NCBI GenBank assembly: GCA_000320545.1
Contig: ADNK01000487.1
Coordinates: forward strand, 13,736 to 77,735
DNA from: Bigelowiella natans CCMP2755
Taxonomy: Eukaryota; Protista; Cercozoa
DNA length: 64,000 bases
Reading direction: 5' to 3'
Shown here: piece after piece, positions 2,371 to 45,309 of the stretch
Layout: each line of letters opens with the position of its first letter
How positions within the stretch are numbered: position 1 is the first letter of the stretch
Notes under the pieces: model-generated
What the model was told of the DNA's origin: nothing
Database searches by the model: none
What the model saw: only the letters and a program-made list of their open reading frames with translations
Position numbers and translations under genes: made by a program

Positions 2371-3753
2371 ATGGATCGTGTTCATTTGTTTATCCTATGT
2401 CTATTTGCTGCTGCACTTCCAGCCTCGGCTAGCGGTTCACGAACAGCTCTATCAAACCGCTTCTCCACTCTCCGACGTGGTCTACGTACTCCGGTAGCAA
2501 GGTCTGGGTCTCAGGGCATCAGGTCTTCCGTGAAGGCCCGGGCCGGTAAGCTTTAAAATTTTGGTGCGAATTTTTGTGTTTTTTCCAGCTTTTTCGTGGT
2601 TGTTTTCAAAAGTTTTCTAACTACTTCATGGCCCCCCCGCCACCTCCGAGTAGGGTTGTTCACACTGGCACACAAAAACAGAAATGCTAAGAGGTGGTTC
2701 CTTGCCAAATGATTAAAAGAAGATTCTCATTTCTTTATTTCGAAAACATGTAGAGTTCATGTGTGTGATATTTCTTCTTCCCCCCCCCGTCTCCGTAATC
2801 AGTTGGATATGTAGTAATTCTGCTGCATCCGCTGATATCAACGAGGTTGTCGCTGAGCCATCAGGTAGTACTTTCATGTGCAGAAGCGCCTTCAATATTT
2901 ATTCTGTTATAAAATTCATATTAGCGGCTTCTTCTTTATCATCTTCCGAGCTTTCCGAAGCAGAGGCAGCTGCCGCGAAAACCAAATCCCTTGGTAACGA
3001 TGATAATGACAACGACGACAGCGCACGTGCAAATTCAAACTAAAACGAAATCAAGGAATAGGATTACATAAGTATATGTAAATAATAAAGCAATTCTTGT
3101 TGCAGGAAGATAATAATACGATGTTTCCGTGCCTTAGTTGCAATTTTGAGAGAATATTCAAACTCACGGGTTGTCTATAAATTGAAGGTCTGATCGCCTC
3201 CGCTGTGGTTTCTCCCCACCCAGCAAAAGTAATAGTTATTCCACCACGAAACTTGCAAATCCATGAAGTTTGCGGTAGAGAAGCTGGTGCTTCTCTGGAA
3301 TATGTGCATCGTGGCAACAGTTGAAACTTCCTGTCGATATGTGTTATGAAGGTGAAGAAGGGCGGCGAAGACGCGTTTTTCTTCAGATCCTCCCTCGTAT
3401 GTTCCAAAACCTCACAACTTCTCGATTTTTCCTTCCCTCAAAATTTGTTGAATTTTATGCGAATCAACCAGGACGGTGGTGCTATAGGCGTTGCAGACGG
3501 TGTTGGAGGGTACTACTTACCGACATATATGTTCTTATCCTCCGGGACGAGTTTCCACGTGTTATCCTTACTCTTTTCTCTTTCTCCCTTCTCAGGTACT
3601 CTGAGTACGGCATCGATCCTGGTATGTTCTCCAGAACTCTTATGCAACAGGTCTAGTTTGCAACCCCGCACCAAAATTTCGCGAATTATAATGATGATCT
3701 GCAGTAATACTACTCGAAAATACGCAAGCGTAAGCATACACACACACACACAT

Positions 3754-3794
<41 letters not shown>

Positions 3795-4307
3795 TGTGCG
3801 CATACATACGAACACAACAAACGCTGATATGATGTACGCATCGTCAACACCGCTATATAGCATCTTCCCGCTGTGCTAACGCTACTTTTTCCTTTTAGTT
3901 AAGTCAATCCGAGGCGAAACAGACTCAGGTCAACCCCGCGAGTGCCCTCAGAGAAGCGCAGGTGAGAGTGAGAGTGGGAGATAGAGAGAGTGAAAGAGAA
4001 AAACAGCCTGTGCAGTATTAATCATCGAATATTCTGCTAGTGCTGATGATGCTACTAATATCGCCTGATAGGAAGCTACACGCTTGCCTGGAGCATCTAC
4101 TGCCGTCGTTCTTCAGCTCAACGGTGAGAAAAGATTGAAGAGATGTACATCTGGAGAAAATAGGCTGTTTCAGCACTCTCTTCGGCGATGTAGTGTGCAT
4201 GAGCTTTCTTAATTCATAAACTTTCTTGGTTCTTTTGTTCTTCTTTCTTCTAAGTTTGGCTCGTGACGATTTTGTTAATGTCGCCCAGTTGTCATCACCG
4301 TCATCTT

Positions 4308-4348
<41 letters not shown>

Positions 4349-4794
4349 TCTCTTTCCCAACAATGTGCTACAGGAACGTCTCGAGAGGCAACCTACGCCA
4401 ACGTGGGAGATTCTGGCATCAGAGTCCTCCGAGATGGAAAGTAGTAGTAGTAGTAATAGTAGTACTTGATAATAAATCCTCTTCCTCCATTGCAAATGAG
4501 TTATTATGATTCTCTTTTTCTTGCGGTGTGTGTGGTGGGCGTTGTGTACCCTTCTCCTCTTCCTGATCATTCTCCTCCTCCTCCTCCTCTTACATTGCTT
4601 TTTGCGTCTCTTCTCCAGGATAGTTTACGCCTCACGGCCACTGATGCATGGTGCGTGTGTAGAATACCCCCTCCGCTTTTTCGTGTTAAAGCAGCAGCAG
4701 CAGCAGCAGCAGCAAATATGTAGTTGTTGTGTATAGCAATGATTGTCATTCGTGAGCGTAAGTAGACTGTGGTGTCGTACTGGTTCTCTCCTTC

Positions 4795-4825
<31 letters not shown>

Positions 4826-5112
4826 CTTCTTCGCCCTCTTCCTCAGGCTTCAACTGTCCATACCAGCTCGCATACACGCGGTTATCCCCCAATGCACAGG
4901 TAAAGAAAAATATCACAAGAGAGAATATTTCTGATGATACTTAATGACCTCATCTCGAGAATCGCCTGACGATAACATGGGGGTGTAGCTTGTTTGATTG
5001 TTTGTCTGTCGTATTAATCTTCCGTCGTGCGGTTTATGAGTTTTTGTGGAAACGTTCGTGTGTAGTATCTCCTCTGAATAGTGTGCTGGTTGTCACCATC
5101 ATCATCGTCATT

Positions 5113-5147
<35 letters not shown>

Positions 5148-5464
5148 TTGAAATCCAGACGATAAAGGACGCCGATATCGAGACAATACCGGTCATTTTC
5201 CGACAATTTATTATGATGATGATAAAATTGATATTGCTGTTGTTGATGCTGATGATGATGATGATGAAAATGATGCGGGCGGATGAAAGTAAAAATCATT
5301 AGAATGTATAAATATATAGATGTGTAGATATATATCTGTGTATGTAAATTATTCCTAAAATGTTACGTTCCTGTTTCTCTTGTCTTTCCCTCTCCTTTCT
5401 TCGCTCGCAGGTGCTGCCTGGTGATATCATTGTGGCTGCCACTGACGGAGTGTTTGACAATCTG

Positions 5465-26806: not shown

Positions 26807-29800
26807 TTACTCATTTTGCGTGAAACTTTCGCTCAGTAGCTTGTAAACATCGACAATGTATTGCATTTGAATGCCCTTCGGAAAGTGCTTGAACCACTCC
26901 ATTTCGTTCATGTAATTGTCACCTACAGGCGCCCAACCGATGAAATCTGCAATTGGAGCTGAGGCAGAAGTTTGCGGCTCGATGAGCCTTTGGATGATGA
27001 GTTCCTGCATTGTAGGAACAAGAGTTTCGAGGTCCAAGCCCTTCGCATCTTGCTGTAACCTCTTCCCTTCATCTGCACCGAGGACCTCCTTGTAGCGAGC
27101 ATGCACGTTCTCAAATGGGTCTTTCACGGTGAAATCGCGGAGCGTCTTCCAGAGGGAGTCGATGTGCTTCAGCTTGATTTTGGATTGGATCGTGTGAGAG
27201 CCGAAATCCACATCCTTCATGAGGAGAACGTCTTTAACGTACTCAATCAGGAACTTATCCCCCACACCAATCTTTTGGATGTAGGAGCCTCCAGTGGCTT
27301 GGAGGAAGCTAATGCAGGTTTCCAGGAGGCGCATGGCTTTGTGCGCCATAGCTGGAGAACCAAGCTCGTTGAGAATTTGTTTTTGCTCTTCACGAGTGAG
27401 TGGTTCTTGGTCTACCTTCTCCTTCAGAAGGAGAGTATTAACCGCTCCTTCATCGTCGGTATATTGCACCATTCGCAACTCCATCTCTACAAGGGGCTTT
27501 CCTACGAAGAAAACGTCAAGCAGATACTGTTCAGCATTGTTGAAGTTGTAGATCGTGGCTCCATCATCTCCTATGCTGACGCATTGCTTCGCGACGAAAG
27601 GAACAAATTTCCCTTCCAAGTCGTACTTCAAAGTGTGGGCGACTGAGAAGAATTTAGACGAAACGACGTTCTTGCGCGAGGAGTTGCGTTGGAGCTCCTG
27701 GCCTCTGAGCAGGAGCTTTTCGTAGATTATTTCCACAAATTGGTTGTGGCGACGGGACAGGTAGTTCATGATACCAAGGCCACAGATTCCCTCATCCTTT
27801 TCCTGGGGAAGCACCATAGTGATTGGAGTCTTCTCATCAATCGAAAATTTCTTGTACATGTCGGGAATCTCGAGACAGGTGAATCGCTCCACGAATTTCC
27901 ACCCTAGGTTCCAGGCCTGCACATACCCCTGGAAAGCATCACGCCATCTCTTCTTATCAGAAGCCTTGGAGATGGCTTGGCCGATCGTCAGTTTCTGAGC
28001 CGCTTCCTTCGTCAAGGCACGGTTGAACTTCTGAAGAAGCAGTGTCTGGAACTCGATTGCGGCGGGGAAGTACTGCAAGGCTTGCAGGTTTTTCTCGGAG
28101 GACAAGAAGGCCGAGAGGACAGGGAAGTTGGCCTTGTTATCCTCGCTGAGGTTGAGTTCCATCGTGAAATCCTCGAGGGAGAACGGCGAGCGATACCGCC
28201 ACAGCGCTGGAGAGTGCTCCTGTCTCATCGAAGCAGGCATGATCTTGATGTCAGATTTTTCCATCAGCTCTTGCGTGAACACTTGTGCTCCGTCCTCCGA
28301 GTCCTGGGCGAACAGCTTCTGCGATGCCTCGAGACGTGGGGCCATGTTCTTGCTATCGAATACAACATCCACATTATTCTTCCCGAAGTGTGTCTCGAAG
28401 GCGTTTCTCTTGGGGATTGTGTCGAGCACCACCCAGCTGTGAATGCCTTGGACCGGGGGTTTCTTCGCTTCTACCAACATGGGCGGAATGGTATTGGTCG
28501 CGACTTGCTTGTTCGGCAGCACGAGATCGTTGAGTAGGGAGTGGAGCAGGATGCCAACATCATCCGGCGACTTTCTCACGAGCTTCGTCAACACCTTCCA
28601 GTCACCTCGGATGTGGTCTGCGAGGAAACCAGCGGTGTTCTTATGTGCTTTTGCACTAATGGTCTTGTTGAACAGCTTGGTAACCCGCTTCACCCATGTT
28701 TTTCCCGACACAATGGAGCCAGCGAGCAATGCACAGTGCATAAGAAGGCGCTGCGATCGGTCACTGATGGGCGTCATCGAGCGGACAGTCTCGAACGGCG
28801 CGCTTTCCTCCTTCGCCTCCTTGAGGCAGTAGTTTGGCTCGGATTTGTCCAGCGCCTTGGTCTTCTGAGAGTAGTTGGTGTTTCCTTCGAGCCCAGAATC
28901 AAGGTCGACCTGCCCTGGAAGGAGATTGTGATTCAGGCCGCCGATCTTAACACCGCACGTGGCGCATTTTTGCACGACGGTGGGGCGACCGCACTTGTCT
29001 ACGAAATACGCATGGCCGTTGGAGCACTTGTACCATCTTCCTCCCAAGATCCGCACGGCCATTGCCTGAGCATCTTCAAGCATGCAGGGCAGCCACTTGT
29101 TCACGCACGTCTCTGGCTTGAAGATGAGTCCATAGAAGAAGCGAGGGAGGCTGTTCTCAGCGGAAGACAGCGCAGCAACAGCAACATGCACGAGCACGCG
29201 GAACAGTACGATATCCTCGGTTTTGCTCTCTGGAGTCAGCTGTAGTAAGAAGCCATTGGCAGCTTCTTCCCATGCGAAGAACGCGATAAACTCGCGCTCC
29301 TGCGCTGAGAGGAAGGCCAGGTTAGGCGAGCTCTTGACCCAGGCTGCCAACTTCTTAATTTGGTTTCTGGTTGCTGCAGGAACGTCCTCAAGGACCTTGA
29401 GCAGGTAGCACTCGTGGAAGATCGCAGCAAGGAGCGCACCTTTGAGCGCGGGGATGCTTTCCTTCTTCTGGGTGAAGGTCTGCGTGCAGATCGCCTCGAG
29501 CTCCTTGAAGCCGGAGGTCTTAGGGTCGAGCCCAGTGCTCAGGGCCACGTGCACGTCGGAGAAGAGGGACTGCGCCTTAAACGGGTTGGTGTTAGGGAGC
29601 TTGTTGGAACCGAGGAAACGGATCAGTCCAGGCTCCGACGTATTCTTCCAATCTTTGAGCCATTTGCATTCGCTCAATGGCGACACGAGCATCGCAGAGC
29701 GCAGGAAGGACACCCCGCGGGATCTCTCAAGATTCTTAAGCAAGAACATGCGAAGGGAACGCACCATCGTCGCCTTGCTTTGGAAGACCGGCTCAAGGGC

Positions 29801-32800
29801 TTTAGACAGCTTCAAGACATCAGGCTTTAGCGCCTGAGCTTTAGTCTTTTCTTCCTTCTTGTCCTCAGTTGCCTGGAGCACTTGGTCGATACCATTTGCA
29901 AAGATGACGATGACATGCCGCAGTTTCGCAATCGTAGTCAATACCTTCTCTACCGGGTGAGAGTTCTTGCCCTTAAACTGGAACTCAAGTTGATCGAGCG
30001 CACTCGTCAACTCTGGCATTACAGCGAGGGCGTCGCCCACGGTCAGGGTTTTTTCGGCGAAAATTTGCTCCTGCACCGAAGCGTAGTTGACGCACAAGTT
30101 GGTGCCTAGATATTTTGCCTTCTTCACGGTCATTGCCATCACTTTATGGATCATCTGTTTTGTAAAGGGAAGATCAGGTGTGCGAGATTTCGATATATGA
30201 CCACAACTTTCGAAGCAATAATTTCCTCAAAGGAACATGCACACACGCACACGCGCACACTCTCACGCACAGGCAGAATTTAAGGGAATAATATCATCGA
30301 GACTTCGAAAAAATTAGACAAAAGTTACCTCCGTCGCCTTCCCCTTTAGTTTGGGGTCCGGAAGCTCCAAGATCTTTCGGAGCAAAAAGCTCTTACCCGC
30401 GTCAGATGGGACGACATCCACTGCCGTCTTCCTCATCTCTTTCAGCTTTTTCCCAGCTAACATCGCCACGAAATCGACGATGAGCTTGCTTTCCTTGACG
30501 TCCTTCCCAGTTGCACCAAAGCAGAGCTCGAAGAGGTAGAACTCCATAAACCGTGACGCAGCAGCCCTAAGTCCCTCTTCCGTGGCCATCGCCTTGAGCT
30601 TGTTCTTGAGGTCCGTTGCAGGCCTGAGCTCTTTAGTTTTTAGAGGCAGGTTTGTGAGCAGGTTGAGGTCATGGCCTTCCAGCCACTCTTCAATTGCTGC
30701 ACGCTCGTATATGCGGCCATCATCTACTAGGATCACAGGGTCCTTGAACGGCTCCAGCGTGATCGGGCAGATGAAATCATCTTTAGGGTTGATGATTTGG
30801 AAGCGAAGGTCGGAGAACATCTTAACAATGGCGCGGAATATAGAGGATGTGCGCAACTCGCCCTTCGCAGTTGGTTCCAATGTGCGTAAAGTGAGAGCCG
30901 GCTCCACCTTCATTGGGACAGAAACATCCCGTATGAACGTGTACGTGAAAAGGAGCTTCTCCCAAGAATTTGAGACTTCCTCAAGCGCGCTTGGAGGCTC
31001 TGAAAGACGTCCGCAAATGGCTAGTAATCCCTCCACAATAGGTCGAACATCCTCGAATTTGGTCATCCAATCGCCATAGTCCTGGACTTCCTTCCACTCC
31101 TGAGCGCTTGGAGCGAGACCGGCGATGACGTGTCCCACGAGCGTCATGTCAAGATCTGCACCCATGCTCTCTGCGGCTAAAACAGAGCCCTTGATGGAAG
31201 CTAGGCATGGAGGCACGGCATCGATCAGCCCAAAGTACGCAGTGATGGTGGTTTCTGTCTGCCAGTAGTAAGCATGGATCTCTGAGATCAAGGTTGGTTC
31301 GGACCCCTTGGCGAGAGAGACGATCTTCCACAATATCTGCGCTTGCTGTACACGATCCATGTTCTGCGAGAAGGCACAGTTCATGGCGGTGAAATCGTAC
31401 GCGTAGCGGAAGAGCGTTGCCTTGTCCATCTTGTCGGCAATACCAAACTCCCAATTGAGGAGCGAGAACTGCGACTGGAGAGACTTGGCAGGATTTTGGC
31501 TATCCTGGGTGAGGGATCGAGCCTCAGTGAGGATACGGGCCAAGAAGAACGAGAAGGGGAAGCGAGAGCGGAATGACTGCGAGGATGATCCGTCACTGAG
31601 GACCTCGACTGCTCCGCCTTCCTTTATGCTCATAAGCTGAAAGCCACCGAGATCATTCACTGAGCGACCGAAGAGGTACAACCAGATATCTCTCACTTTG
31701 CTTCCCGCCTTTGAGAGGAGGAATAAACCGGTGTTTCTGTCCATGTGCGACAGCAGGAGTGCAAAGGCTGAGGATAATGTGTCCAGGATCTGCCTGTGGA
31801 GGGCTGCTTGGAAAGTTCCAGCAAGAGCGAGGTCCTCCTCTTTCTTGGCGGCCTGCATAAGCTCGAGCTTCTTTCCGCTACGTCCTACAATCTCCTTCAC
31901 AGCGTCGCTCACAGGATCGATAAATTGAGGATCGGTCTTGAGCGAGTTTAGCAGGAAGCCAATTTGCTCCTTGACGTCTTCGTTGGTGCGCTCGTGCAGA
32001 TAGACCAACCGAGCCAGGGCGCGTCGGAAAGACGCGAGGAGAACCTTTTTGAGGTCGAGGAGCTCCATGATGTCCTTCATGCTGAGGTCTTTGGTGTTGA
32101 GCATTTGCTGGATGTCTGGGAGACCGGTGTTCGCAGCGGGCTCTATGTCGTCAACGAAGGCCATTCGCCAGCGCTTATCGTAGTCAATGAGGAACTGAAG
32201 ATCACCACGCGGCAGGTGGACCAGGATCACCACATGCACTCCTTTGGGTCCAACTGGTCCTCCTGCAGATCCTGATTTTCCTTCCCCCTTGCCTTCGCTC
32301 TTTCCTTCCACGCTCTCTGCGGTCGCCTTGCCCTCCGTCGCTTTACCCTCGGCTGCTTTGCCTTCGGGCGCTTTGCCTTCTTCCCCTCCAGATTTAGATT
32401 CCTTCGCATCCTTCGAGTCGTCGTCGTCCTTTTCGACTTTCGGTTTTGCGTTCTTCACCTCACTCCAACGGGAGCGGAGAAATTTGGATCGCGCGTGCTC
32501 AATGATGTATCGAGCGTGCTCAATGCGACGGAAGCTTGCTGCCTGAGGATCGCACTGGAGTAGGAAAACTGAGCCCTGCTCGCAGGTCTCGAAGAAGTCA
32601 GAGATAGCCGTTTTAAGGTCTCTTTCGGAAGACAGCTCGTGCAAAGTTCTGGTGGTAACTTTCTTCCATTTACTATGCTGAGATAGAGCCTTTCCAGAGT
32701 GGAGAGACATAGGAGAGAAGGTCAGAATCTGAGCTTGGACACCCATATCATCGCGAGCCCATGGCTCGAACATGTTGTCGGCAAACGTGATGAAGTCAGA

Positions 32801-35800
32801 ATGATGCTGCTTCTTGAAGTATGTATCAACGACATCAATGCTGTGGAGCTGCTTGAGGGCAACGGAACGCTCGCGCAGAGTCATCACGCGGCACGCAGAC
32901 TCGGGGGTTGCGAGCCACAAGAGGCGCTGGATACATTCTTGTGTCGTTTCCTGAATGTCGGACACCTCAGGCAAGGACTGGACCAGGGAGGAAAGCATAT
33001 CGTTGTGGAACCCTACGAAGCAAGTACGAAGGTCTGACATGGAAGGTTTCTGATTGCCTTGGCCTGAGGAGAATATGGTTGTGAATTGGCGCAGGTTCTT
33101 CTCCACCTGTCGCTGAACGTTGGAGAGAAGGTTGGATCGCTCCATCACTTGCTTCTCGAAACGATTCAGCAGTGGAGGCGCCAGTCGGTTGTATGCGTCG
33201 ATCTTCTCGACGACGACGATCACGCGGAAGGAGCGGTGGATCTCACAAAGCCTAGAAGCAGTACCGAACGCAAGGCGAACGTATAGTTTCCCTCCGTATT
33301 CGGTGTAATGCTGGTTGAGTAGGTCGTATAGGGATTCGTAAAGATCCTCGCAGTATACGAGAACAACTGTGCGACCTTCGGCCATACACAGTTTGATGTT
33401 TTGCAGGTTGAGGCAGACCTGAAGGTCGGTCTTATCTGCAGGGAAGTCGGATCCAAAAATAACCTCCGTATTCTCCTGCTTACGTAAGTTGTAATCGAAT
33501 AAGAGCGAGAGAGCAGCGTTATTCTTCGTCAGCAGCATAAGATGACGCGCTTCCTTGGAGCCAATATTTTGACGAATCAACTCCACAACGTCGTCCTCCT
33601 TAGATCCTTTGCGTGAAATACCCATAGTCTCGTAGAACACATCAAGGACTTTCTGCATGTCATTGGGCTTTCCACCAAAGTTGCGCTGCACCGCATTCAT
33701 TACCACCTGTGCGTTGAGCTCGGCGCCCTTCTCTTCCGCAAGCATACGGTTGATGTGGCGAACAGTCGAGTAGAACTCACGAAGTCCCCAGAAGTCCTGT
33801 TGTTTCTGAGATTCGTATACGGTAGAGTACGCTCGCGCAATCTTACGCAGGAATCCGGACAGCTGAGCGTTATTGACCATACCCTCGGCTGTTTTAGACA
33901 GGTCGCTCACGGTTGGGGCCGGGCGGTAGAGATGCACAGCGCGATTCATTTTTGCGGGGTCGAGCGCCCAGTTGGAAATACCGACGAGCGTGTATTCGTG
34001 GTCCTCATCCAGGACCTTGTGGAGAACCTTAAGTGGCAGGTGAGGGCTCTGTTCAGCCAAACCAACCTCATCAAGCAGGACCACGCAAATGGTGTCAGGA
34101 GCACTGAGCTTGTAGCGAGCAGCAGCTTGGAAGGCTTGCTCGATACCGTCGGAAGTAGAGAGTGGAGAGCACTGGTATGAGAAGATGTCCACAGGGGGGA
34201 GAGATCGGAGGAAGGCATTCTCTGAAGCTTCTCCGTTCATGTTCGCCTGGATGAGACCCATGGCCAGCGACTTGGAAGTTCCAGGCTTGCCGACGACGAA
34301 AATAGGGATCTTATTCAGAATCGATACCATGATCATGAAAAGGTTTTCCAAGAGTGCCTCGTTCAGGGCGATTCCTTCAGGAATGTTGATGTGTTCGACA
34401 AAATCGCGCATCACTTGATCAATGACCTTCGAGAATCTATCGGCGTTGAGCTCAAGCCACTGGCAGCGCGGTCCATACTTGGGTTCTTTCTTCGTGGTGC
34501 CGCCGAACACGGAAGCATACAAAGAGCCCTTCTCAACAAAACCGATAGGTTCCTGAAGTTTATCCCAAGTCTTTTGAATAATGACCCCGAATTCTTTCCT
34601 GTCCTCGCGACCGAGACGTGCATGGTAGCAGTAGGCAAGGGACATGATCATAGCCCGACGCACATAATCCCTTGCAACCTCTTCCACGTTGAAGAACTCG
34701 AAGACACCCCACTTCTTATCATCCTTTTCTTCACTCGCGCCCACATGGCCGGCGAAATGCTCACCGAACCAACAGAATACCTTGACAGCGCGCGACACAT
34801 CCCGTAGCGATACAACGGAGCGCTCTTCGTTGTGGATCTTTCTCACGAACTCCTGTGCAGCAGAGATGAGCTTCGCGAACACGGCGACGAACTCCTGGAA
34901 GGGGCTCTCGCCTTTCTTGGACTCCATCTCCTCCATGAGCTTCTTCATCTCCTCAGGGGCCAGGGTGGTTCCTCCTGCCGGGGTAGATCCCGATCCAGAC
35001 CCTTGTTGTCGTTGCAGATTGCGCTGATGCTGAAGAATGCTGACGAGATCATGCGTAGCTTGGTTTCGCTGTCTAGAGTTGCCTCCTTGCATGGCAGCTG
35101 TCATCAGAGAGCGGATACGAGCCATCTCTTCCTCCTTTGTGGAGCCCTGCGATGCCCCACCTCCTTGAGGTTGAGCTGGTGTTGCCTTCTTGTCTCCCTT
35201 TTTCTCGTCCTTCGTCGTCTTCTTCTTCTCCTCGGTTCTCAGGTAGATCGAAAGCTGGCGCTTGAGGATAGCAGCCACATAAAGCGCCTCCGTCGCGGCC
35301 GGAAGGGCGCCGAAATCAAAGACATGGTCAATCATGGATTCGGGAAGAGGGTGTACCCGGTACACTAGATTCTTCAAAGGATCACGGATACCCGTACCGA
35401 TGTTTTCTGAGCCGCCTTGGAATGTGTCGAACGCGAGACCTGCCATGGCCTCTTGTTCCAGCGCTTGCTTCGACTTCAAACGGTATGGATTGCAAGCAGC
35501 GATGATCCTCATAGAGTTGGGCAGGAAGCGACCCTGGACAGAGCGGTCACAGATTATCTCCTTGAAGAGACCCATGCAGTTACAGGTGTTCACTTCATCG
35601 AGGAAGATCACCACTCGCTCCTCGTCGTGCAACATCTCCGCTTCCTCAATACGAAGCTTGAGCCAGCTTACTACATCATCTGCTTCCATTCCACCGTGTA
35701 TATTTAATGTTCTCAACGGCGTCCGCAGCACAGCTGTGAGTTGCTTAATCAGTGAGGATTTGCCGCAACCGGTCTCCCCCATAATCATAACTGGCAGCTC

Positions 35801-38800
35801 ATTTCTCAATCTAAGCTGAATTGACAACATCTTAAGCAGGTTGTCAATAGTAATGACGTATCCAGCGTTAACAGGATCGAGTTTCATGTCAGAGGCCCCG
35901 GTTGAAAGCCTCCAGCCCTCCACCTTTTTTAGGATATCCATGGCCTCTTCAGAGGTCAGCCTGGACCAGTCTTTGTCAAGATGGCGAAGGCCCTGCGCTT
36001 TGAGATTCTCCACAAGGATGGGTGAGATGTATTGGTTGAGGAACCGGCGATTGAGCGAGAGAATGTTGAATCCCTCGTATCCGCCGCCTCTTCTGAAACT
36101 TTCGTACCAGATGCACACGGGGTGATCCGTATCGTCCCACTTCATCATGTTTTGGAATCGAACAGCAAGGTTGTCAGAGGCCTGGCGAACAAGCTCAGGG
36201 TCTGCCCCGCCCTCCCGTGCTTGCGCCTGATCAAAAGCATGGTGGGTTAATTACATACACGACGATTATCAAGAAAGAAGAAGAGTTTTTTCTGGGTGGT
36301 TCAACATTGTTTGTTATAGCCTAGTTGATTCAGAGAAAAATGAACACGAGCGTGACCTCTTGCAATCCGATCGAAGATTGGCGACCAAGTGCAGGCTGTA
36401 CAGGAGGGGGTGCACCAGCGCCAAGTGCCACTTGAGCTTGAAGTGATCCACCACCAAATAAGTTGTTAGCGTTGCCTCCCTGAGAGTAAGGGTTGCTGCC
36501 AAAGGGGTTGGACCTGTTGCTTCCCCCAGCAGAGCCTGTCGCAACGTTTGGAACTTTATTCTTCTTCTCGACACGGCCGAATTGACGGCCACGAGGCACA
36601 GCACGAAGTGTGAAATCCTTGGAGGTCTCAATCATCAGATTGCAGAAGACATGCTTGATACGTTTCAGTTCCTCGAGGAATTGAAGCACCTCATTTGTGA
36701 AAATGAAGTATCCAGTGGTAGGGTCCATTCCTTGGAAGCCCGCATACATGAACTTGATGAAGTTATCGAAGATTAAGTAGCTAGGCTCGTCTCCTGGGGT
36801 TTGCTTGTTCATGGTAAACATTCGCAAGAGCTCAAACGCTTCAGCGGGGGAGAGAGGGTCCATCGGGCCCGGGTTCCACGCGAGATCTAACTTAGCCCCC
36901 GGAAGGAACTTTTGCTCCTTGTAAGCCTTCAAGAAGTGAGTTACGTAGCAAATAGGATCGAGGGAAGTGGGTGCTGGCAGTCCGATTTGGGTGTTTTGGG
37001 GAGGATTCTTAAATATTGGCATTGTGAGAGACATGGTTTCTGGGCCGACTTTGAGGTGCTGCTTTGGAAGCAGGGCGGGGAACCTCAGAGCTTCCGCCGT
37101 CTTGTTTCTCTCAGAGTTAGGAATCTCGAGATAGTAACAGTCCTTATTGCTCCGTGGATACACCGCACAAGTTACTGGATTCTTCAGCACTCCCACGATC
37201 AAAAGCTCGAATAAGCACGTGTTCGCATTGGCAGGAATAATGTGACCGATGTCAATATGGAAGGCGTTACGCTCGCGAGAACCGCCAAACTTAGAGAGAC
37301 GGGCAACTAGAGTTCCCGAGGTAGAGCTTTCATGGTAAGGCACACGTCGGTATGCAAACCGTTCATTAGCGGCCTGGCGTTTACCAATCTGGGTGAGAAT
37401 GTAGTGGGATTTGCCGCCTCCATTGATATTGGAAGATACGCATGTAGTCTCTCCACACCATTTTTTGCACGCGTTCGCAAGGGAATGCTTCAGAGTTTTT
37501 TGATCAAGAGGACCAAGCTCCACAAGCTGAGCAGAGAGAGAGTTCAGCAAGACCTGACGAGGTTTACCAGAGACGAGTAACAGTTGAGCGGCATCGTCAG
37601 TTCCGAAATCCGCCAGCATTTCCCTCAACTTCTCGAGGACAGAGACTTGGTATGTGTATGGCAGAGCGTGGATATCCGCAACCGTGAAGACGTAATGGCC
37701 TCGCTGGTGTTTCTTGGCAGAGATGAAACGGTAGAAAATGAGCTCAATCTCCTCTAAGGTAGTCTGGGACGAGCAGAAAAGGATTTCTGAGGGCTCAGGA
37801 ATACGCCCACGGCGTACATAAACAGACAGAACCACCTCGATGACAGCTTCAGCACTTTCTGCACAAGTAACGAACACCGGCAGACGCTTCTCAGCCATGA
37901 TAGATTCCTCTTCCTCAACGGATACAAGCATATCCGCACGATTCTTCGCTTGAGCGCCTGGAAGCGGAATGGCTCGGAAGTTGGCCTGGTTTCTTCCTTC
38001 ATCCTTTTCTTTCTCGGCAGCTTCTTTCGCCTTTCCTTCAGCACCGGCTCCCTTGCCCTCCTTAGACACCTTTGTAGAGAGAAGGCCATCCAGCATCGAG
38101 CCCAACGACTCGAGCTTAAACACGTTAGCCTTGGAAGAGATCAAGCCCGTATCGTTGTCTTCCTCCTCCATCTGCTTTACCCCTTCCTTAAGCTTCTTCG
38201 AGAACTCGCTGAATACCTTCTGGACCTCCCGTATGTCTACGGAAGACTTTACGAGCGTGAGCATCGACCCAAAGTCCTTGCCCGAATCGTACTGGGTTGC
38301 GTTCTCGCGGTAGGATGGAGAGCGTGATCGCCTTCTCTTCTTAATTCCGCCAGCGTCAATGATCATCTTCGCAAATGCTTCTGGACGAGGGGTCATACAC
38401 ATTAAGCATTTCTCGGTGTCTATCTTGTTGTCGAATGTACACGATGGGCATTTCCAGATCTTCGGAAGGGCATCCTCCTAACATTATCATTATCAGCACA
38501 ATCAATAAAAAAGCTAACAGAGGAAAAATCGGAGCTGGGACTGATTGGTATCACACTTTCATGTCCCCCACAAATTTTGCATACGTTACCTTTGATTCCT
38601 TCTTTTCCTCTTCCTTATTCTGTTCTTCATTCTCCTCCTCATTTCCCTTTGCTTCTTGCGATGGCCTCCATTTTTTGCTCTCTCCCAATAGCAGGTCGAC
38701 CAACTTCAGAATCTCACGCATTGTGAAGAAATTGAGATAGTAGAAGTTCGTACGTGCACGCTTGATAATAGCGTTCCACGAGGAGAGCTCCTGCTGCAAA

Positions 38801-41800
38801 TGGGAAAATTCCTTTTTCAAAGCAGCTGCATTTTCGTCCATAGTGAAAGGAATTCGAATGTGATATCCAGTCTGGAAAGCAAAGTGCCCTTTCTGGAACA
38901 AGGAGAAGATAAGATCCTTAATGTCCAAAGAAATCTGCAACTGGTCGAGGAATTTAGCAACAAGTTTGCTCATCTTGTGCTCCCTCTCCATTTTCGCAGG
39001 AATTTCCGTCATCACAATCTTTGATCTCAAGTCCAATAAAAACTCGAGATTCTCTGTATGAGAGGCCTGCGCCTGCTTGGCCTTCTTCTGTTGTTCGGTT
39101 TCTTCCGCTACTTTTTTGTCCTTTCCTTCTGCAACCATCTTCTTCTCCCAGTGAGTTTCAAGCACAAGGACATCATTAGAATCAGAGGAACTCTTGAATG
39201 AAAGAACACCATTGTTAAGGAAGTGAATAATGTCCTTACAAGCCTTTATACCAGCAGATTCTTTTCCGCCTTTAATGATACGGTAAAGAGCCGCAAAAGA
39301 CTGGGTCACAGACTCAAGGTGGCCTATCAACTCTCCTCCTTGCATATCAACTTCGGTACGGAAGCAGTGGATGAAATCTTTGAGGCTCTTGTAGGGCGGA
39401 GCCTGGTATAGGAGCCTCAATAATGCGGTTCGCAGAGACACTAAAGATGCAACTGCATTGACGATGTTGGCTTCCCCACCGGAATCGTTCACGAACTGCT
39501 TCATCTGATTGAACTGGGCCTGATTCTTCTGTTTAAGAATCCACTCAACCATCTGCTCAGAGTTTTTGTCAGCCAGCAAGGTGAGGAACTTCAACTGAAT
39601 CGATGTAAGCTGCGCTCCGAGGTTCTTTTTAACTGGAGCAACCAGTTCCGTGAGTGAGAGTAGAGTTTTCTTGCTCCACTCTGCTTTCAGTTGTTCATCA
39701 AGGTCCTTGAGCTGCTCATACAGCTGATCTCCTTTCTCAGTTCCCTCAAATAGAGACGCAAGCATCGTCGTCCTCAGCTTTAAGATGGCAGGGATGGAGT
39801 TCTTCATATGAAGCAGCATCGAAAAGTCCTTCAGTTTAATGATAGCATCTTGCGTCCATCCAGCCTGGCCACCAACAAAACCGTCGCCAGTGGATGTCAG
39901 CAGGATTAACTCTCGTACGTATTCTTCGTCGGAAGCCAGGGTTGCGAAGGTTTGTTCCAACCTTGGAACAGTAATGGAGCCATCTCCGACAGAATCCTTG
40001 AGTTTTCGCCATTCTTTCTTCACACGGGGAAGCAGTTCAGCAAATACTTCCGCTCTGTTCAGTTTTCGTGTATTTTTTTCGTCATCGAGGTTGGCAAATT
40101 TTCCCTTTTGGTCTGCAATTCCGGACTTTTCACGAATAAGAGCACGCCCAGACATACGCCATTGATCGAGGAAAAGGCGCGAGTATTGGAGTTCAGACAG
40201 CCACTCCATGTAAGTCACCTCCCTCAGTTTCTTATTGGTAAAGAAATTTTTAAATTTCCTCTTGATATCGACAAGCATGAGGTTGTTGTAGCCTTCTGTC
40301 CAGCTCTTGATAGTTTTTTGCATTTCTGTGACTTCAATAGGGACACCACAGTCACAATAGAAGTTGAGAAAGGTATTTGTTTGACGCAGTAAGGTATCGA
40401 AGTTCTCCACCTCACTAAGCTGAATCTTCAGCATATCTTGGGAGAACTTGCATTTGATCCGGCCGAGAAGGCCAAGTAACTGATCCTGATTATTCTTAAC
40501 TATATTCATAGTTTTCATTGTGGCATGGCCCCATTTCTGGCAAGCCGTCCTGAACGCCTTTTGATCGCTGTCTTCCACATTACAGGTACTTGTGAAATCC
40601 TTCCATTGGCCATCGTTCGTGGAAAGATGCATGACAAATTCTGCATCGTCGTAACCCTGGTCAATCATTGTGTCGACATACTTCGTGGAGATCCCTGCCG
40701 TGTTCAGCATCTCGACAATTTCCATTTGTTTTTGTTTATTTTCCAGGCTTTTCTTCAATTTAGTTTTCTGTTCCTTGTTCATATTTTTGCCCTTCTTCTC
40801 CAACTCAGCTTTGAACCAGGCCCTTGCTTTCTCATAGGTGGGAATTGTAAGAGCTATGGCTGTTTGTGAGAGAGATTCGTGAACGTGTTTGAGTAAGCCA
40901 TTTAATGGGGTGTTTTGCTTCCATTCCGTAGGACTAGCCCCGCGAGTTTCGAATAGCAAGCTCCAAATAACTTCAAAGTTCAAAATTGAACTAAGTCCTG
41001 GCTGCGCGCCCCCTGCAGTCGCTGCAAGAGTGTACAAAAGCGTGTGGCTGAGATTCGACTCTTTGCGCAAGACCTTAATGGAGTCGAGCAGCTTCTTCAG
41101 CTCGTTCTGGTCTTTTGCGACAACTGGTACTACCTCAGCGAGAATTTTGACAGCTCGCTCTGTCAAAAAGGTAGCCAAAGGCTCCTTGTAGTTCATAAAC
41201 CCTTCGTACTTATGTCCGAGGTTTGCAATTGTTTTGAGCACGACAGAACTTTCCCCCTTTAAGCAACGACAACGACCCAATTCAAATAGTAGCGATTGGG
41301 GGCGCTCGAGGAAATACTGGTTCTCCATAAGGCGGTTAATAACATCACAGGCCTCCTCCAATGCGGCTGTAAGTTTCATCTCTTGCTCTGGAGGAGAAAG
41401 TTTCTTTGTCTCCCATTTCGTCACGTAGCCCTCTTTCACCTGAACGCGCTCCTCAAGATTTGGACGCATTGCGAAACCATTCTTAAACCAAGTGTAAGCA
41501 GCCTGGTCCAACCGAACGAATTTAGCCAAAAGTTCAGAGTTCGCTTTTGCTTTCGAGTCCTCTTTCTTGTCGCTACCTTCGGGTGGCTCATCGAAGTTGA
41601 TAGTGTGAGATTTGCAGCACAGTCGAGTGAAGCTCAAAATCGAACCTATGAACTTGGCTTCATCTGTAACACAGGACTTGGACTTGAAGAGGGCGGCTGC
41701 AACTTCAGGTGATTGAAGCATGGGGTACTTCTCCACAAGCTTCTGTAGAGGCCCAAGCTCTTCTTCAACCCATTGAGCAGAGGCAACCCAATCAGCAACA

Positions 41801-44143
41801 GCGGGGAGTGCTTCCTTTAGGTGGATGATAAATTCCTCAGTGAAAAGGAGCGCTAGACTTGCCGTGCATGGAGCGTAAAGAACTAGATGCTTGAGATATT
41901 CCGTCCCCATTCGTTGCATTATTTCTCCATCACTTTCTTTCTTCTCCGCCGCTTCTGCCTCGGAGACTGCCATGACAGCGGCTATTGCCTCGTCACCAGA
42001 CATTGCCGAGTAGTCTACGGCTGCCGCATTATTTTTCGATTCGGGTTTGTCCTCTTTCGCTGCGGCTTCAATCATAACTTGCGCGGATTTGATTGTGGAG
42101 AGAGCGAGCTGCATGAGATCCTTCCACTGCTTATCAAACGACTTTGTGAGTGCTGCACGTTTTTTCATTGCTTTCTTCGAGCCTAAGAGGAGAATGGTAA
42201 ATTACTTTTGAAACTCTAAAAACTCTAAAACACTTTTTGCTAAGATACAAAATGCTGTCAACCTTTCTCCAATTCGATTCGATCTTCCTCTACGTTATCC
42301 TCTTTGTCTCCATCATCGAATTGAACAAAGAAAGTGCCGTTGCTGTTCACACGTCCGATGTAGCCATTATAATAGGTTCCCCTTCCCTTATAGTTGCATC
42401 TTATCCTTTCTCCTTGCTGCAAGGTCTTGTTCAGACCAGCGTTAGGAGGTTGTGGGACAGGGGGAAGCATTTTCTTATCCTTGAGGAATGGTGCCACTCT
42501 GATCCACTGGTATGCCTCGTCATCCATAACACGTTCAGCAGCCTCCCGAAGACCAGCTGTACAGTAATGATAGTGGGGCCCCAATGCTTCCTTTAGATCT
42601 GTCTTCATAAGAGCGTGGACGTCAATGTTCTTAAGAACAAACCAGCACCATGCCGAGGGCTTAAGTTGCAGCTTCTTTTTTGTACCTCCTACGCCCTCTG
42701 TCATCTCAAATTTAGAGATTCCATGAGCTCCAACAACAGCAAGAAGAGCAAATATGATCATAGGATCTAAGTTCTCCTTCTTGGACTCTGCCATCATTTT
42801 CAGTCCCTTTTCCATTGCTTCTTCGCCCTGGTCTCTCGTTGCTTTCTTATTGTAGCAAGAATTCAGATAATAAACTCTGGTGACAAATCCCCGGGGGTTT
42901 ATCTGATAAATGCGAATGGAAGTTACTATGAATCAGCTTAACAAAACGATAACTTTATACCTTTCCATCAAGTAATAGTTGGAATGCAGCTTCAGTTGTA
43001 GATACAATCTGTAATGAAATAAAACACAGTTTCTTATGAATCACTGACGATTTTTTCAATTTATGAATGACTATTCTCGCTGGCTACGAGCTATTCGTAC
43101 CGTATCTGCAATTGTGGGCTGATTGTATCCCTTGAAGAAGCCTTTAGATCCCTTGTTATTCTTCCGTAATATCGCAAAATAATGGGAGTTGCAGGATTTT
43201 TTCCTGGATGAAATCATGTGAGAGAAAATTCATATACATCCTTTTTGTAGTCTGACCTCCTGTTCATTCCTCCTTCCAGATGAACTTTACCTTCAGCGTC
43301 CTGAATTCCGATTTTATACTCGAAAATACCTAATGAAGAACGATTCGAAATTAAATTTGCACTTCTCGCTGTCGAAATATAAATAGCATTCACCAGTGTT
43401 ACAGAATTCCTTTCTCTCGAAAGGCAATTCGATCGATGCCGAAAACATACGCGGGTCTGCCTCCTAAAAAGGAAAAATCACTTAATGTTAAACGAGTGTT
43501 TGGACACAGATTTTATGGAAGATAAACCTACCGATCTTGTCATTTGGACGCCCTTGCCTTCCCATTCTCCCATGATAGGTAGATTTCCCACAACAACTGG
43601 GACTGCTCCCTCAGGTAACCACTTAGCATCAAGCATTACGTGGAAATTACATGCACTTCGGGCCTCAGGATCTATAAGAAGAAATGTGATTTCAGCACAT
43701 GTAGTATCATGAAAACGTTACGAAGCTCACTTTTTGGTATGTATCCCTTGAATTTCGGTTGGTACTTGTCACATTCTTCCGCATAATGGAAACCTCGCAT
43801 TCCGATAATGCTGAATGTACGTTCGCGAAATCTGGTCCATCTGTAAAGGAGATTTTTAAATATATGAAAAGATATCGTTGAAGCAAACAATTCTATGCAA
43901 AGAGAAATTATAGCGAGAAATTTATCCGAACCTTTTATCACCATCCGTGTAGACAATGTGGTGTGTTCCTTTCTCATCATCCCAATTGTCAATATCTCCT
44001 TGGTACCATTTGTCCATTTTTGGCCAATGCACAGAGAGTGTTTTGCCAAGGAGAAACTCAGGGTCGGACTCGTCATATTGCCACTCTGCCTCCCCCGGCA
44101 TGTAATTGGGGTCTTTTGTGACCTCTGACGGAACCTCGGCCAT
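26807..44143 (-). CDS. RNF213/mysterin-like giant AAA+ ATPase / E3 ubiquitin ligase (~5,400 aa): Tudor, CBM20-like, Tudor, NZF, AAA core, U-box, RZ finger, CTD
   Basis: Phase-compatible exons 42902-42263, 42182-38590, 38477-36357, 36226-30329 and 30154-26807, plus about seven small 5' exons from the ATG at 44143. RNF213-type motifs: GGGKSHY, MGETGCGKS...FLDEVNT, IAACNPYR, LVYRVHPLPESM, VGKPGTSKSLA, SYQCSPLST, LLDEVGLAE, GISNWALDPAKMNR, LYDLLNQ, PLLNRFEK and RZ finger CSNGH...CGRP...CATC...IGGLNH. Confidence 0.93.
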
Positions 44144-45309
44144 TTTTTTGATCTACAAAGACCTGTATAAAATAAGCACGTGAGTTTGACGGCGAATATG
44201 AGTGGAATGCTCGAGCAATCGTACTGCCACTTTAAAGTTGGCACTTGAAAACATGCCATTCGAAAGAATGATCTCCCAAAATGTATCTCGATATGACTTT
44301 CGTACAAACAAATTCGAACAATTTGAGAAAGAAATAGAGGATTGAGAGAGTTGAATCGAGAGAATAGAGGGATGGAAGAGGGAGGGTACGAACAACCTCC
44401 GTGTAAAAAAGATCTTGTGGACTTGTTCGGGAGGGGCCAGCGATTCAGCTTTACGAAATGCCTTTTCTCGTGACCAGATCCCAGAATGTATTATGTTCCA
44501 CCTTAGCGGATTGTACTTTTAGAAGTCGTAAGGATATTTTAAGCTTTTGCGCATCGACAGAGAGAAAACTAGTTGGAAAATGCACGCAATCGAAATATCA
44601 GGATATTTTCTGGAGTGGTTTAAAGGAATGCAGCTGCAAATTCGCCAAACAATGATGAAATGGAAGTCGTTTAATACGAAATGCACAACAATTTACTCCT
44701 TTGAATGCTTGACTTTGCACTCAATTAAGAGTAAACTGCACCGAACTGGTAAGACAGAGCCCTGCAATTATTCATCCTTTGTAAAGTGTTTAATTGCAAG
44801 AAAATATATGAGGTTTCTCACATGAGACACAATTTTAAAGCAGTTAGCAATCACATTGTAGGATATAAGCAATATAACAGGCAATGAAAAAACTAAATAA
44901 ATAGCAAATCATTGCTGACAATTTCAAACTCAATACCAGAAAAATCTTCTTTTTGCAGGTGATTTTGTCCTGCATCCTGGATTGTAAGACAAAAAAGTTA
45001 ACTCGTTAGCTTTCCACTCTTTTCGACGGAAAAAGCTGAGATTCGTCTTTGGTTTCCGTTCGGTTTTTTTTTGTAGTTAACATCAAGATCCAGTAGATCA
45101 ACAGCTCGCGCGAGAATTTATTCCTAGTCTAGCTCCTAAGTACAACTGATTTTTTTTTCCCAGCTGGACTAATTCTATGTAATTCGAGAATGAAAATTTA
45201 CGTGTGCGATTTAATTTTCCCAAGAGGAAATCATACTTTTTCCTTGCTGTCTCGGTTAATTTTTTTCTACGTCGTAAAAATCCTCGTCATACATCTGATG
45301 TCAGTACCC

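Follow-up and report, generated by a model that had tools for sequence, protein, structure and literature searches.

A U-box at the RING position of an RNF213-type protein in Bigelowiella natans

Which domain occupies the RING position of an RNF213-type ubiquitin ligase (E3) that has no RING, and what might it do there? The question is raised by a locus in a 64,000-nucleotide stretch of Bigelowiella natans CCMP2755 DNA (assembly GCA_000320545.1, contig ADNK01000487.1, positions 13,736 to 77,735), hereafter the window, which encodes an expressed RNF213 homologue of about 5,100 residues. The reading put forward here, and considered probable, is that a genuine U-box sits at the point of the RNF213 RING, that this point is a cassette site, and that the domain provides a second docking site for ubiquitin-conjugating enzymes (E2s) beside the transthiolation reaction of the RZ finger. 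All searches were run exon by exon, and each tree is built from the block of one exon only.

The feature is a genuine U-box, a zinc-free member of the RING superfamily, in an RNF213-type protein. It is read on the minus strand at 30590..30781 as residues 1790-1853 of a 1944-residue frame, begins DDFICPITLE and ends DLKNKL, and has the Cys of its CPI motif at Cys-1794. Asp-1790 begins at base 30781 and the Pfam match stops at 30590; of the interval 30590-30785 given in the original prediction, the lower bound is thus exact and the upper bound four bases too high. The isolated 94-residue piece covers positions 3-66 of the 73 in the Pfam U-box profile PF04564 and scores 43.5 bits (E 3.7e-11), where the cut-off is 21.4 bits; such a score is not due to chance and bears out the description of the domain as a typical U-box.

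The domain contains one Cys and one His only, and no set of eight zinc ligands. In an AlphaFold2 (AF2) model of residues 1400-1944, with a mean predicted local distance difference test score (pLDDT) of 70.7, it forms a hairpin, helix, strand and helix at model residues 405-454. Model residues 387-460 superpose on the U-boxes of the plant ligases OsCIE1 and GmPUB13 with a root-mean-square deviation of 1.8-2.1 A, a Z score of 9.0 and 36-42% identity. A Pfam search of the gene's five large exon frames gives no RING match at E<0.1, and the minus-strand coding frames between 26.7 and 45.5 kb hold no 50-residue stretch with at least 5 Cys except the RZ finger, in agreement with the earlier failure to find a C3HC4 RING in the E3 region.

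Sequence and fold both place this U-box on the RING, and together they show positional equivalence: the domain separates the final pair of E3-back helices, at the point of the vertebrate C3HC4 RING. The sequence comparison uses profile A2, built from the E3-module region of the window copy and five relatives. Positions 29-512 of the profile align with human RNF213 3607-4101 in a single stretch (E 1e-13), in which the profile motif 'eCpitLeklkDPv' falls on 'PCSICLGDAKDPVCLPCDH', the Cys of CPI falls on C3997, the first zinc ligand of the human RING, and the helices on both sides are aligned. Two of the A2 relatives carry Cys-rich domains, and for this reason a control profile, A3, was made from U-box carriers only; it still matches RNF213 (E 1.5e-7), in an unbroken stretch whose end falls within the RING. 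Profiles were needed because plain phmmer, run with the exon on the PDB, reached only the AAA core and gave no alignment of the E3 module.

The flanking segments belong to the same alignment. Before the slot, an E3-back-like helical region (residues 1405-1781, 30806..31936, minus strand) aligns with human RNF213 3607-3996 and ends in the helix that precedes the U-box. After the slot, helices that run up to the exon end (residues 1860-1940, 30329..30571, minus strand; '...AAASRFMEFYLFELCF...VVPSDAGKSFLLRKILE') align with human RNF213 after the RING. In a Foldseek search with the AF2 model, the nine best matches are all RNF213 (best E 2e-7), and superposition on the human E3 module (9jwg_A 3702..4156) gives Z 15.1 over 391 residues (VIA). 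The model runs from a helix at 369-387 through the U-box to a helix at 458-477, the same arrangement as the E3-back insertion described by Ahel et al. From the start of the U-box to the start of the RZ match there are 521 residues, compared with 524 in the homologue P0001 and about 508 between C3997 and C4505 in human RNF213. The proposal that the U-box occupies the position of the RNF213 RING therefore holds in both profile alignments and in the fold comparison.

The same point holds different domains in different relatives. Relatives were collected by a length-limited word search (5 and 6 relatives), by a metagenome scan (3 loci), and by an exhaustive search, run without P0009, with profile A6, which covers the pre-slot region alone so that ordinary U-box and RING proteins stay out of the match list. 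This search yielded 665 cluster representatives at E<=1e-3 (313 at E<=1e-10), and the slot survey drew on the best 150 of the 665, of which 82 reach the slot and were classified. The 82 slots comprise 35 that are Cys-rich or RING, 9 U-boxes, 9 empty slots, 4 of other kinds and 25 that are unclear. In the empty ones, the flanking helices are separated by 27 or fewer residues.

Among the Cys-rich slots, 25 of 35 match Pfam RING families at E<=0.01, and the sturgeon RNF213 and a mussel RNF213-like protein have a RING at the slot columns. The U-box form extends beyond this genome to at least 9 further clusters and occurs in 3 paralogues within it; every family U-box scored (12/12: the nine of the survey with the window copy, P0001 and P0004) matches PF04564, with a best E of 5e-18. 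P0001, P0004 and P0005, all from the word search, combine a U-box with an RZ finger. P0002 and P0003 have, at the U-box columns, an all-Cys arrangement C-x2-C-x10-C-x4-C-x4-C-x2-C-x15-C-x2-C with end-to-end but sub-threshold RING matches, and the metagenome locus L003 is of the same type. Another locus, L005, is an uninterrupted 2159-residue frame with a 77-bit RZ finger that lacks profile positions 389-466. The slot, as often empty as filled by a U-box, is therefore dispensable as well as exchangeable, and its exchangeability, suggested originally from the window copy, is borne out by the relatives, some of which lack a domain at this point while others have a C3HC4 RING, the all-Cys RING variant or a U-box.

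What surrounds the slot varies little. The post-slot helices are kept in all relatives irrespective of slot content, and the distance from slot end to RZ finger is 376-483 residues whatever the slot holds, in the classes where the slot end can be placed. Among the representatives that continue for at least 650 residues beyond the slot, to which the test was limited, the RZ finger is present in 43 of 43. The companion claim that RZ is the conserved unit accordingly stands for these relatives, with one possible exception in a paralogue of the same genome that is described below.

The all-Cys slots form a recognizable type of their own, confined to one subgroup. Those of P0002, P0003, L003, P0018, P0027 and P0152 share the pattern 'EC-x-IC...PVRFC....CRRLVC..C...(15-17)...CFWCR', in which there is no His ligand, the 4-residue spacings are unusual, and RING scores of 13-17 bits stay below threshold. 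The domain may be an undescribed RING variant.

Comparison of slot and flanks supports the earlier suggestion that an E2-binding module was swapped in place. Between the window copy and its nearest, all-Cys relatives, the flanks are 38-43% identical and the slot 11-25%; the distant U-box carriers P0004 and P0005 show the reverse, with 27-28% identity to the window copy in the flanks and 40-43% in the slot. For single pairs, P0002 gives 42% in the flanks and 25% in the slot, and P0004 gives 28% and 40%. Slot and flanks thus disagree, every family U-box carries the canonical Pfam signature, and the two points together speak for discrete replacement rather than gradual loss of ligands. An origin in place, in which the ancestral RING lost its zinc ligands stepwise and drifted to a U-box-like fold with no replacement at all, would account for the lack of insertions and deletions at the domain borders and for the start 'C-x-I-x-L....DPV' that the U-box, the all-Cys variant and the human RING have in common, and the half-RING, half-U-box hybrid of ZNFX1 shows that intermediates can exist. 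Such drift is nevertheless improbable: the canonical Pfam U-box model is matched by all 12 U-boxes of the family, their identity to those of plant PUBs is 36-42%, slot identity to the Cys-rich domain of the nearest relatives is far below that of the flanks, and no partial-ligand intermediate occurs among the 82 slots.

The phylogeny of the flanks bears on how often replacement took place. The main tree covers the pre-slot region in 47 rows, with the slot excluded, and is arbitrarily rooted on sturgeon RNF213. It contains a basal grade with RINGs and one clade in which every U-box carrier falls, along with six empty slots and the all-Cys variants, with a support of 99 in the Shimodaira-Hasegawa-like approximate likelihood ratio test (SH-aLRT). 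The window protein falls outside the animal sequences. Together with P0001 it groups with P0002, P0003, L003 and one empty-slot row (support 97), and the other eight U-box carriers stand separately (support 92). The tree requires ten state changes, and a single clade of all U-box carriers is rejected by the approximately unbiased (AU) test (p 0.0086). Because the flank tree rejects such a clade, the slot changed state repeatedly, and at least two separate events in the variable clade involved the U-box.

A tree of the U-boxes themselves is weak and places those of the family on one side of a branch (support 64) from twelve other U-boxes of the genome. It would fit a single capture, after which family members replaced or exchanged the domain, as well as several captures from donors that resembled one another. 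The basal members of the variable clade have empty slots in the Fitch sets, and loss of the slot domain followed by re-insertion is possible. In this family the slot acts as a cassette site, with a canonical RING in the basal grade; in one well-supported clade it is either empty or filled by an all-Cys RING variant or a U-box.

In the complexes of CHIP and UBE4B, the Ile of loop 1 and the Ser/Asp-Pro of loop 2 contact the E2. An alignment of 12 family U-boxes has ten invariant columns (C, I, P, V, D, G, E, W, T, P), all of which are kept in the window copy, and its loop 1 'CPITL' is intact. The residue at the linchpin position is Asn in the window copy, Gly in P0001 and Leu in human RNF213. 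According to the ZNFX1 preprint, Gln, Asn or Lys are usable there, though inferior to Arg. The genome supplies a candidate partner, its own UBE2D-like E2 of 150 residues, which is intronless and is encoded at L006:1483-1935 (G000:C3501). This E2 has 'HCN' instead of the usual 'HPN' before its catalytic Cys.

Prediction of the complex between the U-box and this E2, along the lines proposed originally, gave weak support: the score was 0.45, versus 0.00 for the best of 3 controls, and is to be read against a calibration in which 51 of 78 solved complexes and 2 of 108 mismatches attained the mark, but no more than 5 of the 78, together with every one of the 4 passing mismatches, did so at 0.60 or under. 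Contacts agreed between the runs in at least 54%, and the partner pLDDT was at least 73. In the mechanism envisaged, the U-box would dock a UBE2D-like E2~ubiquitin as a second, RING-type site and the RZ finger would carry out transthiolation, so that the enzyme would be a two-site ligase of the kind shown for ZNFX1.

Several observations weigh against this reading. One concerns loop 2, where the original prediction had noted a change to LNLLT: Ser-Pro is kept in the 11 other family U-boxes of the 12, and Asn-Leu is found in the window copy alone (N-L-L-T versus S-P-x-T). By the RING correspondence, the site of this change matches the seventh RING ligand and the Pro that follows it. The Asn-Leu pair is specific to the window copy and may retune or weaken the E2 site. 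The predicted complex may have passed through likeness to the many solved U-box:E2 complexes, that is, through the memory of the model. The AF2 confidence within the U-box is moderate (pLDDT 62-80, from a 6-sequence alignment). In the mammalian enzyme, the RING is dispensable for auto-ubiquitylation and for ubiquitylation of lipopolysaccharide (LPS) and is inactive in isolation (PMC12075652, PMC12440826). At least 9 relatives have an empty slot, so the core reaction need not involve the domain. On the phylogenetic side, a 10-row tree does not reject U-box monophyly (p 0.17), and the backbone inside the slot-variable clade is poorly resolved.

Some of these points would equally suit a vestige, a folded plug that has no E2-docking role and is on its way to being lost. 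On the tree the slot lost its content at least 6 times, the RING of the mammalian enzyme is catalytically silent, the Ser-Pro of the E2-contact loop is gone from the window copy alone, and the slot of the window copy is 64% identical to that of P0001 while the flanks are 76% identical. A domain without function would hardly be expected to keep all ten invariant core residues and to score above the Pfam cut-off, or to persist in all three paralogues of the genome, and the predicted complex, weakly positive as it is, also speaks for docking. The vestige is therefore doubtful, and an E2-docking U-box is preferred.

The RZ finger with which the U-box would cooperate lies at 28913..29044 on the minus strand, in the last exon. 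It was found by Pfam (PF20173, 66.2 bits), by alignment to human RNF213 and in a six-frame scan. Residues C377, H381, C388, C397, C400 and H409 of the 1115-residue exon correspond to human C4505, H4509, C4516, C4525, C4528 and H4537 with the same spacing; C377, H381, C397 and C400 are the zinc ligands, and C388 and H409 form the Cys/His pair. The remainder of the E3 module and the C-terminal domain (residues 303-1106 of the last exon, 26837..29248, minus strand) match human RNF213 4429-5149, and mouse RNF213 as well, at E 2e-38 (phmmer), so that the C-terminal domain is homologous up to human residue 5149.

The far end of the C-terminal domain is less clear. In the mouse enzyme, the E2-docking residues of this domain are F5093, W5097, Y5106 and E5108, and they have no confident alignment in the window copy. 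The mouse motif F-x3-W-x8-Y-x-E is present in the relative P0081 ('FSSEWSLNETIFSYLE'). In the C-terminal 50 residues of the window protein (26810-26960, minus strand) and in P0001 and P0002, a 4-residue gap covers the F..W part of the motif in the MAFFT alignment, which is ambiguous at such identity. A search of the PDB with the last 116 residues of the window protein gave no match.

These observations bear on where charged E2 might enter. In the mammalian enzyme, the E2 for transthiolation docks on the C-terminal domain (PMC12075652), and in ZNFX1 both activities draw on the same E2 port, a zinc-poor cross-brace domain (bioRxiv 10.1101/2025.09.05.674436, 10.1101/2025.10.14.682297). By analogy with the Z-RING of ZNFX1, the U-box rather than the C-terminal domain could, in this clade, be the entry point of E2~ubiquitin and feed both direct transfer and RZ, though this stronger version is unlikely. 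If true, it would explain why a fresh E2 cassette was acquired after loss of the RING and why the mouse docking motif finds no alignment, and the RNF213 RING slot would be an ancestral and usable E2 port, not a relic.

Known systems help to place the window protein. Vertebrate RNF213, or mysterin (6TAX, 7OIK, 8S24, 9JW1), likewise has an AAA core, the E3-back, shell and core, a C-terminal domain and an RZ finger of identical spacing. As here, a cross-brace domain parts the final two E3-back helices and precedes RZ by about 505-525 residues. The vertebrate insert is a C3HC4 RING, whereas here it is a zinc-free U-box, and the N-terminal part differs as well, with an NZF finger and weak Tudor-like matches in the window protein. 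Counting the homologous C-terminal domain, whose E2-docking residues align ambiguously, four of the five features that define RNF213 are present, and the RING, the name-giving domain, is absent. With a U-box and no RING in its slot, the protein is placed among the RNF213 homologues, as one whose E2-binding insert is a variant, and not among RING-finger proteins.

ZNFX1 resembles the window protein in having a zinc-poor RING-superfamily E2 dock, called Z-RING or Miz-like, upstream of an RZ finger (bioRxiv 10.1101/2025.09.05.674436, 10.1101/2025.10.14.682297). In ZNFX1 both activities have been shown by experiment. ZNFX1 differs in being a superfamily 1 (SF1) helicase without an AAA core or C-terminal domain, and it keeps one zinc site where the U-box keeps none. 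Alongside ZNFX1, the window family is a second group of RZ ligases in which an RZ finger is paired with a zinc-poor cross-brace domain.

The third comparison is with U-box ligases proper. The plant PUBs (OsCIE1, GmPUB13), CHIP and UFD2/UBE4B share the Pfam family, the fold and the motifs CPI, DPV, G-x-x-YER-x-x-I-x-x-W and P-L. In canonical U-box ligases, the domain is a terminal module, whereas here it is an internal insert in a 5,100-residue AAA+ ligase. Their loop 2 has Ser/Cys/Asp-Pro; here it has Asn-Leu, and the linchpin position is Asn.

The RNF213 and U-box families are already known; what is new is the set of RNF213 slot variants, with a U-box, an all-Cys domain or nothing. No paper on a U-box, all-Cys or empty form of the RNF213 slot was found in a full-text search of an incomplete library. 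The RNF213 RING is of wider interest: mutations in it are linked to Moyamoya disease, and Shigella IpaH1.4 targets it, yet it has no linchpin residue and is dispensable for every measured activity (PMC12440826, PMC12075652). Its function has been called elusive (PMC12440826). The family offers a natural series at one insertion point, with a canonical RING, an all-Cys RING, a U-box or an empty slot before a constant RZ finger. Placement of a different E2-docking fold at this same point at least twice suggests that selection acts on E2 docking there in some lineages, and the existence of empty forms indicates that the core enzyme works without the slot domain. The series amounts to a set of ready-made constructs for testing the contribution of the site.

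The gene as a whole comprises five large exon frames (185+1205+690+1944+1115 residues) at 26807..42815 on the minus strand, delimited from the open reading frame list and transcript contigs; its 5' limit is that of the large frames only. The U-box exon frame (1944 residues, 30314-36148, minus strand) is uninterrupted and holds both the U-box and a dynein-like AAA core (residues 76-1495, 31664..35923, minus strand). The core matches the mouse and human RNF213 structures in four stretches (phmmer E 2e-151) and the Pfam families AAA_5 (48 bits, residues 119-223) and AAA_7 (40 bits). The last exon frame (1115 residues, 26807-30154, minus strand) carries the RZ finger and C-terminal domain. The U-box accordingly lies between the AAA_5 match and the RZ finger at 28913-29044, as had been predicted.

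The two frames are joined by splicing. P0001, which is 72% identical and uninterrupted, runs across the gap between them and so predicts an intron of 174 nucleotides (30155..30328, minus strand, GT-AG, phase 0). Transcript contigs of 15.1-16.6 kb, assembled from one run in each of four studies, lack exactly this 174-base stretch. Since these contigs otherwise match the window, they represent one very long mRNA in which the U-box exon is joined to the RZ exon.

An artefact of assembly or gene modelling, in which a U-box gene has been fused into an RNF213-like locus, is scarcely credible, and nothing was found that speaks for it: AAA core and U-box share one open frame, the region is covered by transcripts of four studies in which it is spliced to the RZ exon, and P0001, P0004, P0005, nine further clusters and two paralogues have the same architecture. 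In contigs of three of the four studies, the U-box is identical to that of the window. The fourth transcript set (X17) has A>G at 30509 and A>T at 30515, both outside and downstream of the U-box, and these are likely a strain difference.

The genome contains three RNF213-like paralogues, all with a U-box. The paralogue at G000:C1447:67040-84836 (plus strand, loci L035-L038) is full-length and 38-67% identical to the window exons. Its U-box scores 54.9 bits and has 'TAPMT' (Ala-Pro) in loop 2. Its RZ finger is intact and is encoded in three exon pieces, with two introns around a 42-nucleotide mini-exon that encodes GHAYYVDNCGLPMQ. A six-frame Pfam scan that returned one RZ finger had been read as a sign of a single copy; it was an undercount, since the RZ finger of this paralogue is split by introns. 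The other paralogue (G000:C1107:17539-39500, minus strand, loci L039-L041) is 36-54% identical and has 'ISPVT' in loop 2. No RZ finger was detected in its expected interval with the family hidden Markov model (HMM) or by motif searches; the finger may have been lost or be too diverged, or the copy may be decaying. It is the possible exception to the conservation of RZ.

The upstream part of the gene holds further features. The most upstream large frame (42261-42932, minus strand) has Tudor-family matches that are all sub-threshold, the best at 19-20 bits against cut-offs of 25-31, and none of the Pfam families matches the frame at 43675-44490. The start of the 690-residue exon (38382-38456 of the window, minus strand) encodes a zinc ribbon of the RanBP2-type NZF kind (PF00641, 32.4 bits, cut-off 27), and the upstream part of the P0003 contig holds an NZF feature as well.

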